From Octopus sinensis (Eukaryota), in assembly GCF_006345805.1 (NCBI RefSeq), contig NC_043010.1:64914001-64978000 (forward strand): 64,000 bases of DNA, given 5' to 3'. Within the stretch, counting starts at the first letter, position 1. The number at the start of each line of letters is the position of its first letter. The position numbers were made by a program, and so were the translations under genes. Below are positions 905-36,600 of this stretch, piece after piece. Below the pieces are notes generated by a model. It had not been told where the DNA came from. It searched no databases and saw only the letters and a program-made list of their open reading frames with translations.

Positions 905-1053
905 AATGAATATTTAGAAAATATATTCAGCTTTATATCCGTGCAGATCAAATTTCTATTAATAAAATCCATCTGATCACGTTTTGTCCATCGCATTGTT
1001 GATAAAGTGGCTTGTTTCCATATAATCTGTAGCAAACTGAGCTACTTAACACA
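905..1053 (-). pseudogene. Highly decayed EGF exon type B
   Basis: Acceptor atattttcag about 230 nt after the A donor at 1283; codons TGT TAA GTA GCT CAG TTT GCT ACA GAT TAT align with B-type TGT GAA GTT GGT AGA TTT GGT AAG AAT TGT; in-frame stop and Cys losses; 3' boundary approximate. Confidence 0.6.
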
Positions 1054-1283
1054 CTGAAAATATCAACGAAGACAAAATACATAAGATGACTATACTCATT
1101 TTCTGCATTAGAAATATAATGAGGTATCAAAACATACATCTTTACTCAATATAAGGAAATTTGAAATAACTCTTTATTAAAACTCAAGCAGTTTTATTAT
1201 AAAAAAGGAAGGTAAATACGCTGATTTAATAATATTAAAAAAAAATCAATAATTCATGCGTAATAAAATGTATTGAAAATAAC

Positions 1284-1412
1284 CTTGTTGGCAGTTGAAT
1301 CCGTGGTATCCTTCATCACATGTACCTGGACAGGAGCCGTTAATGTTGTTACACTTTTCAGAACAACGACATAACACATTGCATCCAAGACCAAATCTAT
1401 CATTGGAACACT
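1284..1412 (-). CDS. EGF exon type A (ECSNDRFGLGCNVLCRCSEKCNNINGSCPGTCDEGYHGFNCQQ)
   Basis: tttcag|AG ... CAAG|gttatt, 129 nt. Confidence 0.88.
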
Positions 1413-1584
1413 CTGAAATCAAAGTGGTTACAGACAAATTGCAATAAGGATAATTTTATAGTCTTATATAGACGGTAAGATCTGCCACAACGAAGTAAAG
1501 TTATTCTTGTCCATCAATTTCATTTCATCTTAAGATAAAGAAATATAATCTATCTTGTATGAAAAATGGACAAATAAATTATTA

Positions 1585-2830
1585 AGATGGGTGGGCCGAA
1601 AGATTCATTGGTTAACTATGAAGGAATGAGGCTAGAGCTCTGAAATGCTACATGAATGAATTTCAGCACATTTTATTAATTGTAAACTGACATTTGATTG
1701 TTCAAAGAAGACTTCAAATGTAAGTAGCAGCAACTACTCAGCGTCGTGTTGTTATCAAATACCTACAAAAGAAAAGGTTTAGTCCCGGAGGACATTCATG
1801 CTGACATGGTTGCCACATTAGGGCATGACATTCCAGCTTTAACAACATTGCAAAAGTGGGCAGTTGAATTTAGCGGATGAGGGTGTGTGTCTTGATGTTA
1901 ACGCAAGGTCTGGAGGTCCTGAAACTGCCATGAGCCAGGAAAACAATGTTCGTGATCACTCTATAGAGATAGTGACAAGCGAGTGACCAAAAGCCAAATA
2001 GTGAATTCTGTTAGCATACCCCATGAAAGCGATGAGCATATTCTGAACAATAAACTTGACATGACCAAGTGGGTGTCACATCGGTGGGTTTCACATCTGA
2101 CACCTGATCAAAAACAAAAGGCAGATCACATCAGGTGAAAATCCGACATTGTTTGAGGGAGATCCAGTCGGTTTCTTTGAACGTTTCCACATCCAGGATG
2201 AGTGTTAGATTCATCACTTTGGGACAGAGACCAAGAGACACTCCATTCGGTGAAACATCCTTCCTCAACTACTTCTAAGAAGGCCAAGTCCGTTTAATCT
2301 GTAGCGGAGATGATAGTCAGAGTTTTGGGGGACATAAAAGGAATTGAGTTTATTGAGTAACTTGAAAAGGGCCACACCACCAATGGAGAGTACTATACCA
2401 ACTTACTGAGGCAGTTGCGAAAGGCTATCAACACCAAATGTCTAGGAAAACTAATGAAAGTGGCTTTGCTTCATCAGTTCAGTTCTCCAGCATAGAAGTC
2501 CTTGATTTTAATGGCTGCTGTGTGTGACTGCGTCTTTGAACTGGTTGATCACTTACCCTACTTTCCTGATTTGGTCCCACCTGGCAAATGTCTGTTTCCC
2601 AACATGAAAAAACACTTGGCTGGGAACTAGGATCGCAATGGCGATGATGTCATATCCGCTGTCGATATTTTTTAACAACGGGTTGAAAGCTTCTTCAGCA
2701 ATGGGATCCAAGCACTGCAACTCCGATTAAAGAAATGTTTGGAATACAAGGGGGACTGTTTTGAAAAATAAGCCTCATTGATGTTATTCCATGTGACTAT
2801 CTTGGTCAGCTTATGAACTCGTCCAGCACG
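1585..2830 (+). mobile_element. Decayed mariner-family DNA transposon, near full length
   Basis: Degenerate TIRs (gatgggtgggccgaaagattca / atgaactcgtccagcacg); WVPHLT-like remnant (tgggtttcacatctgacacct) and PDLxP-like remnant; many stops. Confidence 0.75.
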
Positions 2831-3693
2831 AATATTGTATGCATCAAAGCCATACACCATTCGTGTAGATCAGTCACTTTTTGGTTTTCCTCTGATTAAT
2901 AAACGCTGATATCTAAAGATAACTAGTCATTTTAGAGTAATAATGCCATGAGTGAAATACAAATCAGTCTAGGATGTTGATATTGCAGCACATGTAAATC
3001 CTCCTAAATAATACAAGAGATGTATGATTGTGATACAATCTATCACAATCATAAACTAATATGTAAAAGGTGTGCAATATTGACAGATACGAACTACCTC
3101 TTCAATTAGAATAATTATCGAAGGAGTAATTCATATCTAAAATTGTTTGACTTATGTTACTATGCACGCATATTAAACTGAGGATATCAATATATATATA
3201 TATATATATATATGTATAAAATTAATATGATGTTTGGGAGTTGTCATCTTTCAGTATAACTTAGAAAGTAGTTAATGAATGAATGCTTAGAGAATATATT
3301 CCTTTATAGACAGTGTTGATTTCATTTCCGTTTGTACAAATATAAAGATTTACTAAAATACAGGAACGCAAATATAACTCCACACACACAGCCCCATACA
3401 CATACTCACATATACACGCACCTATACACACACACGCATACATAAACACACACAGGCACATATAAACGCACGCGCACACACAGAGATATATACATAGTCA
3501 TTACGAGTCAAATATTTCCTGATTTCTTTACGAAGATTCTTGTGAATGAATGCTTGAAAAGCATAATTGTTATATACCTGTGTAGTCCTCATTTCCACTC
3601 GCACATTATTGAAATAACAGGAAATATTTAGAAAGAGACGAATCCACAGGTTGAGACATATTTTTAAAAATATAATGTAGACTTAAATTATAC

Positions 3694-33754: not shown

Positions 33755-34340
33755 CTGAGATAAAAAAAAACATTAGCCATGAATTGCTATTATAAGAGTT
33801 TTATGATATAGTATGGATGACTTAATATGCTAGATATTGTTATTTGTTTTAGCATTACAGACACGAGATAGAAATGTGTATATACTTGATTCTTCATTGT
33901 ATTTCAACGTGGATCAATGAAATATCACTATAGATAATAAGATGAAAGTATTCGGGTAAAATCAAATCCGATGAAATATCAAATATAGATAATTATAAAG
34001 AATCACGAGCAGCCAAACGACTTCCTTCACCATCTTTTGCATACGTCCTCTCCCTATAACAGAAATTGTGTTTAATGGCGATAGAGTTATCAATGAATGA
34101 AAGTTTGGTAAGAAGCTTGCTTCCCAACCATATGGATCCGGGTTGGGACACCTAGAATCGCACAACGGCCTAACAACATACAGAACGGATGTACACTGGT
34201 GATGATGATTGTTAATGATACCTAATCTCATTGAAATTACGTTTTTAACATGGATATTATAGCCTATCCTTTAGTTCAATCGATTTCTGTATGTCTTCTT
34301 CAAGTCTTCTCATCTACCTTATATCTATGATGAATATATA

Positions 34341-35549
34341 CAGAGGTTGGACAAAATAATGGAAACGCCTACTATTATAGCATCAAAATTTTGAAATATC
34401 TATAAAAACCATAAAAAAATTATTTTTATATATTTTCTGATTTATTATTATTGTCGCGTAATATGTTTTGCTAAAATTGCTGTTTCTTTTCAGTTACCAT
34501 TAGAAAAAGGTAATTAAAATCCATTAAAATAACACATCTATTGGACTTTCAAAGAGGTCGAATTGTTGGTGCTCATATGACAGGTGCTAGCATAACAAAA
34601 ACAGCCGAAATGTTTGGTTTATCAAGAAGTACTGTCCTGAAAGTAATGCAGCCTTTGAGAAAGTGGGAAAAACCTCCTCTTCGAAACAAAACTCCGGAAG
34701 AGAACCAAAACTTTCAGATAGGGACTCCTACGCGAATTGTTAGAATGGATCACAAAAGTACAGTTCCCAAAACTCTTGCAGAGCTGAAGAACTACATTGG
34801 GAATCCTGTTTCCACAAAAACTGTTTCCCGAGAGCTGCACAAAGCCAGATTTTACGGGAGTGCTTATTCAGAAAACCACTACTTTGAAAATCAAACGTCG
34901 CAATTTTTTTAGGGTGGAGTAAAAAACAACAGAATTGGTCCTAGAGCATTCTTCACCCTATTTCCGACCACCGGTCGAGTTAACGTGTGGAGAGATCCAA
35001 AAGAAGCAAGAACCATTTGATCCAGACCGCCTTCTTCCAACTGTTGAATATGGAGCAAAATCTGTGATGATCTGGGTTAGGGATATATCTTGGAAATTCC
35101 CCGGCCTAATTGTTTCCCTTCATGGCAGAATTAATGGTAAAGGCTATTTAAGCATTTTATCTAATCAAATTCAACCTATGGTTGCGGAACTGTTTCCTGA
35201 GAGAAACGCAATCTTTCAGGATGATGATGCACCAATTCACACAGCTAAAGTTGTTACTGAATGGCAGGAATATCATTCTAGTGAAGTGAAGTTCATCGGG
35301 TCACCAGTGTCCACTGATCTCAATATTATTGAGCATTTATTGTGCATTTTATAAAAACAAGTAAAGATACGATATCCTCCACCATATCGATGTTATAATT
35401 ACAAGAAATGGAGATTGTTTTTGTTGAAGAATGGACAAAGATTCCTTTGGAAACAATTCAAAGTTTGTACGAGTCCATACCTTGTAGAATTGAAGGTGTA
35501 ATTACTGCCAAAGGCGGTCCTACCCCATATTAAGATAATTTGTTTAAAA
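34341..35549 (+). mobile_element. Duplicate of the Tc1-like element, right TIR lost
   Basis: Same left TIR and insertion flank as 31478; ends at tgtttaaaag. Confidence 0.88.
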
Positions 35550-36076
35550 GTTACATGTGTGTGTGAGCTATATATATGTGTGTATTACACTGATACGTAT
35601 GTATGTACATATTATATACATACACACATAGATATATATATATTTACATGTATATATATAGAGAGACATATATATATAAGCATAAATACATATATATATA
35701 TATATATATATATACATTTATACACACACATATATATATATATATATATATATATATATATATATATATATATATATATATACATATATATATATATATA
35801 TGTATGTATGTATATGCATAAATACATATACATGTATATGTACAAATACATATCCATACATATATACAGCATACATACAAGCGCATAGAACCCATATATC
35901 TCAATATATCTCGATATGAATTCACGAAGTATTTAATGAATGTAAGTTTGGAAAATAAACTGGTTAGTCTGCGTCTCCATTACCACGTTAATTAAATGAA
36001 AGAAAAGATAAAATAAGAATCAGATGCAGAGATTTAAACATAATTTTATGAAATATTTTATAGTTTCATATCACAC

Positions 36077-36210
36077 TTTGTTGACAAAAGTAGCCTCTAT
36101 ATCCAGCAAAACATCCATCTGAGCATTTCCAGTTATTCTGTCGCAGTTTTCGTCGTCGATACAATGACATGTCCTTCCACAATTCTTACCAAATCTACCA
36201 ACTTCACATT
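36077..36210 (-). pseudogene. EGF exon type B with 1-nt deletion (134 nt; frameshift)
   Basis: GGAAATGC here versus GGAAAATGC in paralog 33229-33363; adding one A restores KCSDGCFAGYRGYFCQQ; splice sites intact (ttttcag, gtgtga). Confidence 0.75.
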
Positions 36211-36471
36211 CTGAAAATATTAATACAAAACGCAATAGATTAGATATTATTAGCTCCACACAATAAAAGTTATGGCTGTAAGAGTTCTCTTCTACAAATA
36301 TATGTGAGACATCAATGATACGCTTTTTTATTATCTTATCTTAAAACATAACTTATGAGTTAACGTTGAAGTAGTCTTTGATGATAAATAAGAAAGTTGA
36401 TTTACGCTAAGAAACAATAAATCAAATGTAGAGAATTTTAAATTGTTGGAATAAAAAGTATTGGAAATAAC

Positions 36472-36600
36472 CTTCTTGGCAGTTGTACCCGGTGTATCCT
36501 GCATCACACTCACCTGGACATAATCCATTTATGTGGTTACATGTTTGGGAACAATGACAGGACTTTGCGCAATTGCGACCAAATTTATCGCTGAGACATT
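36472..36600 (-). CDS. EGF exon type A (ECLSDKFGRNCAKSCHCSQTCNHINGLCPGECDAGYTGYNCQE)
   Basis: tttcag|AA ... GAAG|gttatt, 129 nt, 8 Cys. Confidence 0.88.

Follow-up and report, generated by a model that had tools for sequence, protein, structure and literature searches.

An array of two-exon EGF cassettes in Octopus sinensis as the probable stalk of a lectin-EGF receptor tyrosine phosphatase

The kringle IV-2 repeat of human LPA is a two-exon repeat, and haptoglobin Hp2 carries a two-exon duplication. In both genes, a two-exon, disulphide-rich unit was amplified by unequal recombination, and the symmetric phase of its exons keeps the reading frame. The tandem ectodomain exons of Dscam1 and of the arthropod alternative-exon clusters offer a second comparison, as they could yield many isoforms; in Dscam1, docking and selector RNA pairing governs the choice among mutually exclusive exons. 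This work concerns a stretch of 64,000 nucleotides (nt) from Octopus sinensis (contig NC_043010.1, positions 64,914,001 to 64,978,000; hereafter the window), whose minus strand carries an array of exons encoding epidermal growth factor (EGF) modules between positions 905 and 36,600. We consider it probable that this array is the stalk of a lectin-EGF receptor phosphatase and that it was built by repeated cassette duplication and exon death. It resembles the LPA and Hp2 repeats in the amplification of a two-exon, disulphide-rich unit of symmetric phase. However, the octopus copies are older, have diverged by 2-40 %, lie among transposons and microsatellites, and some of them are dead. It resembles the Dscam1 cluster in its tandem ectodomain exons, from which many isoforms could likewise be made, but the EGF exons are additive modules, and no pairing elements turned up, although none were specifically sought.

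Among membrane proteins, MEGF10/Draper/CED-1 and SCARF1/2 (SREC) are, like the predicted octopus protein, type I receptors with a stalk of tandem EGF modules with eight cysteines. Their tails contain NPXY/YXXL motifs or are rich in Ser and Pro, whereas the octopus gene combines an F-type lectin head and no detected EMI domain with a tandem tyrosine phosphatase tail. Classical receptor-type protein tyrosine phosphatases (RPTPs) share with the octopus orthologue a single transmembrane segment, a D1 domain with the motif VHCSAGVGRTG and a degenerate D2 domain. Their ectodomains consist of MAM, Ig and FN3 domains, in contrast to the F-type lectin and MEGF-type EGF repeats found here. The fish F-type lectins AAA (1k12) and FBP32 (3cqo) have the same His/Arg/Arg fucose motif as the octopus domain, which, unlike them, forms part of a membrane receptor, with EGF modules on either side, and does not have their adjacent Cys-Cys pair (MKSRD compared to GDCCPE).

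The identity of the gene was derived from a protein search with the joined exons, followed by mapping the exons of homologues onto the window. The search led to octopus proteins annotated as 'receptor-type tyrosine-protein phosphatase T-like', 'protein draper' and 'MEGF10', and none of the entries in the protein database was identical to the window exons across the whole gene. The assignment as a phosphatase receptor is based on a locus of O. vulgaris (L001; OX597827.1, 73.54-73.65 Mb, assembly GCA_951406725.2), because this collinear locus carries the transmembrane exon and the tandem phosphatase exons. The window and L001 are collinear over 59 kb, with about 2 % substitutions and many microsatellite indels. 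In L001, the transmembrane exon (64799-64894) lies 2.3 kb further on than the position that corresponds to window base 3, the exon joins leading to it are also in phase 1, and an active D1 (VHCSAGVGRTG) and a degenerate D2 (HCRKNFHKSG) are encoded beyond it. The protein of this locus, P0066, contains an F5/8C-type lectin and two Y_phosphatase domains according to Pfam (PF00102, E = 1.9e-97). For the lectin domain of the window, phmmer gave striped-bass FBP32 (3cqo, E = 9.5e-23) as the best PDB match and eel AAA (1k12) with 1.7e-8, and the positions of the fucose-binding motif are aligned, with His in CAHT and Arg in NR and RDRL. The EGF module upstream of the lectin, EGF0, has 84 % amino acid identity to the octopus proteins P0070 and P0002.

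As judged from these similarities, the head domain is an F-type (fucose-binding) lectin, and the gene is predicted to encode a type I lectin-EGF receptor tyrosine phosphatase. An earlier reading of this DNA from its letters alone (the sequence-only reading) had proposed a lectin-tipped receptor with transmembrane and cytoplasmic exons, possibly of a phosphatase, outside the stretch; the lectin was borne out by the FBP32 match, and the transmembrane exon and phosphatase tail are present in the orthologous L001. The gene would begin with N-terminal exons located to the right of the window, followed by EGF0, the two lectin exons, an irregular EGF exon (EGFx) and the EGF array. The transmembrane exon would follow outside the window, at a distance of about 2.3 kb from its left end, and after it D1 and D2.

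The same reading had assigned the repeats to the MEGF10/Draper/SCARF type. This holds for the modules, which are eight-cysteine modules of the SCARF/Tie/MEGF type, but not for the gene, which is not a member of these families. The only Pfam match of the EGF modules, EGF_STAB1-2, was below its cut-off, and the PDB sequence matches of the stalk were weak, to Tie2 and SCARF1 (E = 0.26 for SCARF1). Membership in Draper/MEGF10 was rejected as no EMI domain was found by Pfam in the full-length O. vulgaris relative P0070, which showed F5_F8_type_C domains only, and as a phosphatase tail takes the place of the NPXY/ITAM tail. SCARF proteins, with an EGF-only ectodomain and a Ser/Pro-rich tail, were rejected due to the lectin domain and the phosphatase tail. 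The gene family is already contained in databases and poorly named: homologues appear at NCBI as RPTP T, kappa, mu or alpha-like, and an EGF-plus-phosphatase architecture occurs in database annotations of Magallana, Crassostrea, Ruditapes, Bulinus and Acanthosepion, that is, in oysters, clams, snails and cuttlefish. No paper on the lectin-EGF receptor phosphatase architecture was found in the literature searched.

The cassette units were detected by self-comparison of the window and by BLAST with one unit as query. This yielded eight related segments between 905 and 36,700 on the minus strand, numbered U8 to U1 in the direction of transcription, which runs from high to low coordinates (Table 1). 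A complete cassette consists of exon A (129 nt, transcribed first), an intron of 230-262 nt and exon B (135 nt). All cassette exons are of phase 1-1; they start after AG, end before GT and have one base of a split codon at each end. Each of them encodes one EGF module with eight cysteines, spaced C-x8-C-x3-C-x-C-x3-C-x6-C-x3-C-x8-C in exon A and identically in exon B except for x5 instead of x3 in the middle. This pattern has 12 matches in the six-frame translation of the window, all on the minus strand, and none in 100 shuffles. Eleven exons are intact (A8, A7, B7, B5, A4, B4, A3, B3, A2, B2 and A1) and four are dead or disabled, namely B8 by a 1-nt deletion, A5 by a cut, and A6 and B1 by decay. 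The eight whole or partial copies claimed by the sequence-only reading were thus confirmed in exon size, intron length, phase and range of states. An assembly artefact as the source of the array was ruled out, since the units are 2-40 % apart and occur in the same order in the independent O. vulgaris assembly.

Table 1. Exons, pseudo-exons and duplicated blocks of the receptor gene in the window
Feature	Position	Strand	Length and state	Remarks
EGF0 exon	62979..63122	-	144 nt, phase 1-1	8-Cys EGF, upstream of lectin; donor gtaagt
F-type lectin exon 1	54759..55016	-	258 nt, phase 1-1	has His (CAHT) and NR motif
F-type lectin exon 2	41814..41996	-	183 nt, phase 1-1	
EGFx exon	40734..40877	-	144 nt, phase 1-1	irregular EGF between lectin and array
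U8 exon A	36472..36600	-	129 nt, intact	
U8 exon B	36077..36210	-	134 nt, frameshift	1 nt lost from AAAA run
U7 exon A	33626..33754	-	129 nt, intact	in no annotated protein retrieved
U7 exon B	33229..33363	-	135 nt, intact	in all O. vulgaris models
U6 pseudo-exon A	~23929..24048	-	4 Cys codons lost	donor lost
U5 exon A remnant	21171..21185	-	last 15 nt and donor only	
U5 exon B	20797..20931	-	135 nt, intact	100 % identical to O. vulgaris L001
U4 exon A	17588..17716	-	129 nt, intact	100 % identical to L001
U4 exon B	17220..17354	-	135 nt, intact	identical to L001 B2, not L001 B4
U3 exon A	9539..9664	-	126 nt, open frame, 8 Cys	in no annotated model
U3 exon B	9159..9293	-	135 nt, intact	in no annotated model
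U2 exon A	4063..4191	-	129 nt, intact	
U2 exon B	3694..3828	-	135 nt, intact	
U1 exon A	1284..1412	-	129 nt, intact	oldest lineage; in no annotated model
U1 pseudo-exon B	~905..1053	-	decayed, several stops	47-51 % divergent from other B exons
2.86-kb tandem copy 2	34142..36992	-		carries U8 and Tc1/mariner remnant
2.86-kb tandem copy 1	31284..34143	-		carries U7 and Tc1/mariner remnant
Mosaic U2 block	2608..4494	-		U4-type cassette joined to U3-type flank

The mechanism behind the array is the well-known tandem duplication of symmetric-phase exons by unequal recombination, accompanied by conversion and decay. The intron between exons A and B can be aligned in all seven units that retain it, which indicates that the whole exon-intron-exon cassette was copied as DNA. 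The alignment of these introns contains a branch-point-like GATATCTAAT conserved about 30 nt upstream of the acceptor; a conserved intronic regulatory element was not found in it, the conservation being restricted to the branch point and the polypyrimidine tract. A distance tree of whole units gives four old lineages, U1, U3, {U2, U4, U5} and {U7, U8}, which are 26-40 % apart, while recent duplicates have diverged by about 2-13 %. U6 has no exon B and has its upstream flank in common with U3. The amplification of the cassette and its gain and loss, both proposed by the sequence-only reading, are well supported by the homologous introns in seven units, clear tandem junctions, recent duplicates and the four dead or disabled exons.

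The tandem junctions have periods of 2.86 kb (U7/U8) and 3.58 kb (U4/U5). The U7/U8 repeat is a perfect head-to-tail tandem with copies about 13 % apart. Each copy contains the same Tc1/mariner transposase remnant (31780-32493 and 34935-35354, both on the plus strand; HTH_Tnp_Tc3_2 above the Pfam cut-off, DDE_3 near the cut-off), and therefore the insertion of the transposon predates the tandem duplication. In the U4/U5 tandem, 16206-17602 corresponds to 19741-21185 with 94-95 % identity, and the two units, spaced by about 3.58 kb, are about 4-5 % apart. The homology stops inside exon A at 21185, which explains why U5 retains no more than the tail of this exon. The copy that had been described as truncated is indeed truncated, and its exon A was cut by a duplication breakpoint, not by decay. 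The array is the result of DNA duplications of a unit of about 0.5 kb, comprising exon A, the intron and exon B, together with its flanks, and exons were lost by breakpoint truncation (A5), decay through point mutations (A6, B1) and a 1-nt deletion (B8). Long microsatellite and low-complexity tracts are located at 5100-5300, 13350-14300, 17900-18600 and 24800-25300, with (CA)n, about 1 kb of CA/TG-rich sequence, about 0.6 kb of (TA)n, and (CATA)n as the tract types. They separate cassette units and explain most of the indels relative to O. vulgaris.

The U2 block is a mosaic, in which 3457-4263 shares 96.5 % identity with the U4 block at 16983-17788, whereas the downstream flank at 2608-3361 is 91-96 % identical to the U3 flank at 7835-9078. 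Its cassette is 2-3 % apart from the U4-type cassette. B4 of the window is identical to B2 of O. vulgaris, and A2 of the window is closer to A4 of O. vulgaris than to A2. In addition, the introns of U2 and U4 do not differ by a single substitution, whereas their flanking exons are 3 % different. These observations point to a continuing sequence exchange between U2 and U4. Selection as the cause of the identical introns was disfavoured, and patchy exchange was preferred because the exon differences show no nonsynonymous bias.

The old paralogous exons are 20-29 % apart, compared to 32-47 % for the introns between them and 47-51 % for the dead B1. Since about 16 % of random changes would destroy a Cys codon, about 5-6 such hits are expected both among the differences between the exons of U7 and U8 and among those between the cassette exons of the window and O. 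vulgaris. None was observed, in either the former (0 of 32; chance ~0.003) or the latter (0 of 36; chance ~0.002). The sparing of Cys codons indicates purifying selection on the disulphide framework, and the sequence evidence favours functional intact cassette exons. The remaining residues of the stalk change at about the neutral rate, which is fast for a coding sequence and not demonstrably adaptive. For the pooled stalk exons of the window and O. vulgaris, the nonsynonymous proportion of differences (pN) is 0.021 and the synonymous proportion (pS) 0.034. There was no clear signal of positive selection on the stalk exons in this comparison, with a pooled ratio of nonsynonymous to synonymous rates (dN/dS) of about 0.62 on 36 differences. 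The dN/dS of 2.9 for B8 and B7 is derived from 13 changes only.

These rates would also be compatible with a mostly dead array, in which the real stalk consists of the 3-5 modelled EGFs, and A7, A3, B3, A2 or B4, and A1 are unspliced relics in which disabling mutations have yet to accumulate. The divergence of the cassette exons from O. vulgaris is close to that of the introns (~0.02), and the exons of U7 and U8 are as diverged as their non-coding flanks (12.2 % and 13.0 %, Fisher p = 0.77). The splice sites of A3 are poor (acceptor ctag, donor gttaat), and none of the supposed relics was found in a retrieved database protein. For A7, A3, B3 and A1, this negative result is weak because the search was insensitive and also missed the protein P0001 despite an identical transmembrane segment. 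Moreover, A1 and A3 retain all eight cysteines and an open frame at a divergence of 24-29 % from other A exons, whereas their truly dead neighbours look different: B1 has diverged by 47-51 % and contains stops, and A6 has lost four cysteines although it is only about 23 % from A3. Likewise, none of the 17 differences between the window and O. vulgaris in unannotated exons falls on a Cys-critical site (chance ~0.05). A dead array is therefore considered quite improbable compared to a duplicated stalk whose intact exons have remained functional.

The evidence for exon use consists of annotated gene models and retrieved proteins. The O. vulgaris annotation merges Iso-Seq, RNA-seq, protein alignment and ab initio prediction (PMC10700109). 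The model of L001, P0066, joins B8, B7, B5, A4 and B2 (encoded at L001 58512-58646) to the transmembrane exon and skips A8, A7, B4, A3, B3, A2 and A1. P0067, from a near-identical O. vulgaris gene copy, joins A8, B7 and B5 to the transmembrane exon, and the O. sinensis model P0002 contains A,B,B,A,B before it reads through into an intron. All cassette donors are non-consensus (gttatt, gtaatt, gtataa, gtatga, gtgtga and gttaat; e.g. at 36471, 33625, 17587 and 4062), and the consensus donor gtaagt is found at both lectin exons as well as at EGF0. Facultative inclusion of the cassette exons is suggested because the donors are uniformly weak and the O. vulgaris models use 3-5 exons. Every exon including the transmembrane exon is in phase 1, so that any subset splices in frame and dead copies can be skipped; this frame-neutral skipping would explain why dead copies are tolerated. 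The length of the stalk would then depend on which of the 11 intact exons are included.

A separate observation concerns the models P0003 and P0067, whose N-terminal 30 residues match 16423-16512 and 19947-20036 on the plus strand at 100 %. These matches are antisense to the receptor gene and lie inside the duplicated flanks of U4 and U5. The first exon of both models probably falls within a repeat element, and its annotation may be an artefact.

The comparison with orthologues across Octopus species, suggested by the sequence-only reading, gave a divided result. L001 matches the window in all eight units and in their order; the sole difference in state concerns B8. The O. sinensis locus L004 is collinear with the window over 29.6-63.6 kb and shows A,B,B,A,B in place of A8,B8,A7,B7, with one extra exon B. 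It looks like a paralog of the window gene, since the identity is only 90-96 %. The closest O. bimaculoides locus, L003, contains a single cassette that is sister to the entire U2/U4/U5 clade at 16-17 % divergence and lies 2.25 kb before the transmembrane exon, with no U1 between them. A second O. vulgaris copy, L002 (OX597827.1, 73.80-73.92 Mb; L002 105325 onward), is 99.7 % identical to L001 over 32 kb in inverted orientation, and a TGCG-to-TAAAG change creates a stop in its exon B5. L002 ends at an N run inside exon A4; its status is therefore uncertain, and it may represent either a true duplicate of recent origin or a haplotype contig placed wrongly. From these alignments, the array content appears to differ only in the more distant loci L003 and L004, and not relative to L001.

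The agreement with L001 could also be explained by a static constitutive stalk, in which the array is old and stable, all 11 intact exons are always included and the dead copies are always skipped. Consistent with this are the identical eight-unit arrangement in the independent O. vulgaris assembly, the Cys framework and open frames kept in all intact exons including those of the old U1 and U3, good acceptors, and the conserved branch-point-like TCTAAT/TCTAAC motifs. On the other hand, two near-identical O. vulgaris gene copies are modelled with different subsets of exons, the donors of all cassette exons are weak, and L004 has a different number of units. The duplicates that are 2-13 % apart also postdate the split from O. 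bimaculoides, in which one unit represents the U2/U4/U5 clade. A static stalk is thus an unlikely explanation, and a stalk that grew by repeated cassette duplication and lost individual exons is preferred.

Several points nevertheless weigh against this preferred reading. The identical copy number and order in L001 mean that a rapid turnover is not visible at about 2 % divergence. The rapid turnover of the stalk postulated by the sequence-only reading is therefore not seen in the closest comparison; the different content of L003 and L004 speaks for turnover on a longer scale. The orthology of these two loci to the window gene is itself uncertain because the family has several paralogs, and some of the apparent turnover could be divergence between paralogs. 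The frameshift in U8 exon B may be an assembly error, since the deletion is a homopolymer contraction and the exon is intact, with 135 nt, in the three related loci L001, L002 and L004; after correction of the frame, all eight cysteines are retained. The gene models with exon subsets are suggestive rather than proof, as they are partly ab initio and the 95-100 % identity between exons makes the placement of reads and models ambiguous. The dN/dS of the stalk does not separate relaxed from diversifying selection. Finally, the literature searched contained no functional data on the lectin-EGF phosphatase family.

The strongest sign of fast evolution lies in the lectin and not in the stalk. Between the window and O. 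vulgaris, the lectin exons differ by 16 nonsynonymous and no synonymous changes, although about 3.3 synonymous changes would be expected (P(none) ~0.02). Lectin exon 1 alone accounts for 13 nonsynonymous and no synonymous changes relative to L001, and three consecutive replacements, EKE to VIG, directly follow the sugar-binding His. EGF0 and EGFx show further, mostly nonsynonymous, changes compared to O. vulgaris, and lectin exon 2 has a dN/dS of about 1.2 compared to the O. sinensis locus. This pattern suggests diversifying selection or exchange with a paralog. The exchange is an alternative to positive selection because the non-coding DNA around lectin exon 1 is unusually divergent, with 5.5 % compared to about 2 % elsewhere.

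In the proposed receptor, the stalk would hold a fast-evolving lectin head away from the membrane, and binding of a ligand would modulate intracellular phosphatase signalling. A more far-reaching possibility is that the 11 intact, frame-neutral EGF exons with their weak donors are used combinatorially. The gene and a small cluster of near-identical paralogs would then yield many isoforms with stalks of different length and composition, below a fucose-lectin head under diversifying selection, and would represent an octopus-specific, somatically diversified recognition receptor. By analogy, its logic could be compared to that of Dscam or the snail FREPs, and we regard this possibility as quite improbable.

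Other elements were observed in the window. The open reading frames (ORFs) at 6204-7028 (-), 12484-13083 (+) and 52861-53163 (-) contain a CxxC...GIY-YIG-like motif typical of Penelope-like retroelements, with a weak Pfam GIY-YIG match below the cut-off. An inverted pair at 6727-7121 and 12884-12491 coincides with strong GC-skew spikes in opposite directions, one at 6-8 kb and the other at 12-14 kb. The ORF at 56496-56903 (+), which lies in the large intron separating EGF0 from lectin exon 1, has a CCHC zinc-knuckle motif with a weak Pfam match below the cut-off and looks like a gag-like retroelement remnant.

The duplication of phase-1-1 EGF exons is textbook knowledge, but this locus is unusually legible, as intact, frameshifted, breakpoint-cut and decayed copies adjoin each other, the duplications are datable, and the copies bear signs of mutual exchange. 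Octopus genes labelled 'draper', 'MEGF10' and 'RPTP T/kappa/mu-like' belong to a single lineage-specific family, the lectin-EGF receptor phosphatases, and current gene models contain less than half of the coding-competent exons. As it stands, the locus represents an ordinary mechanism, well documented, in a little-studied gene family. If the variable inclusion of exons and the selection on the lectin were true, the family would become a candidate for recognition receptors in cephalopods, a group without adaptive immunity.

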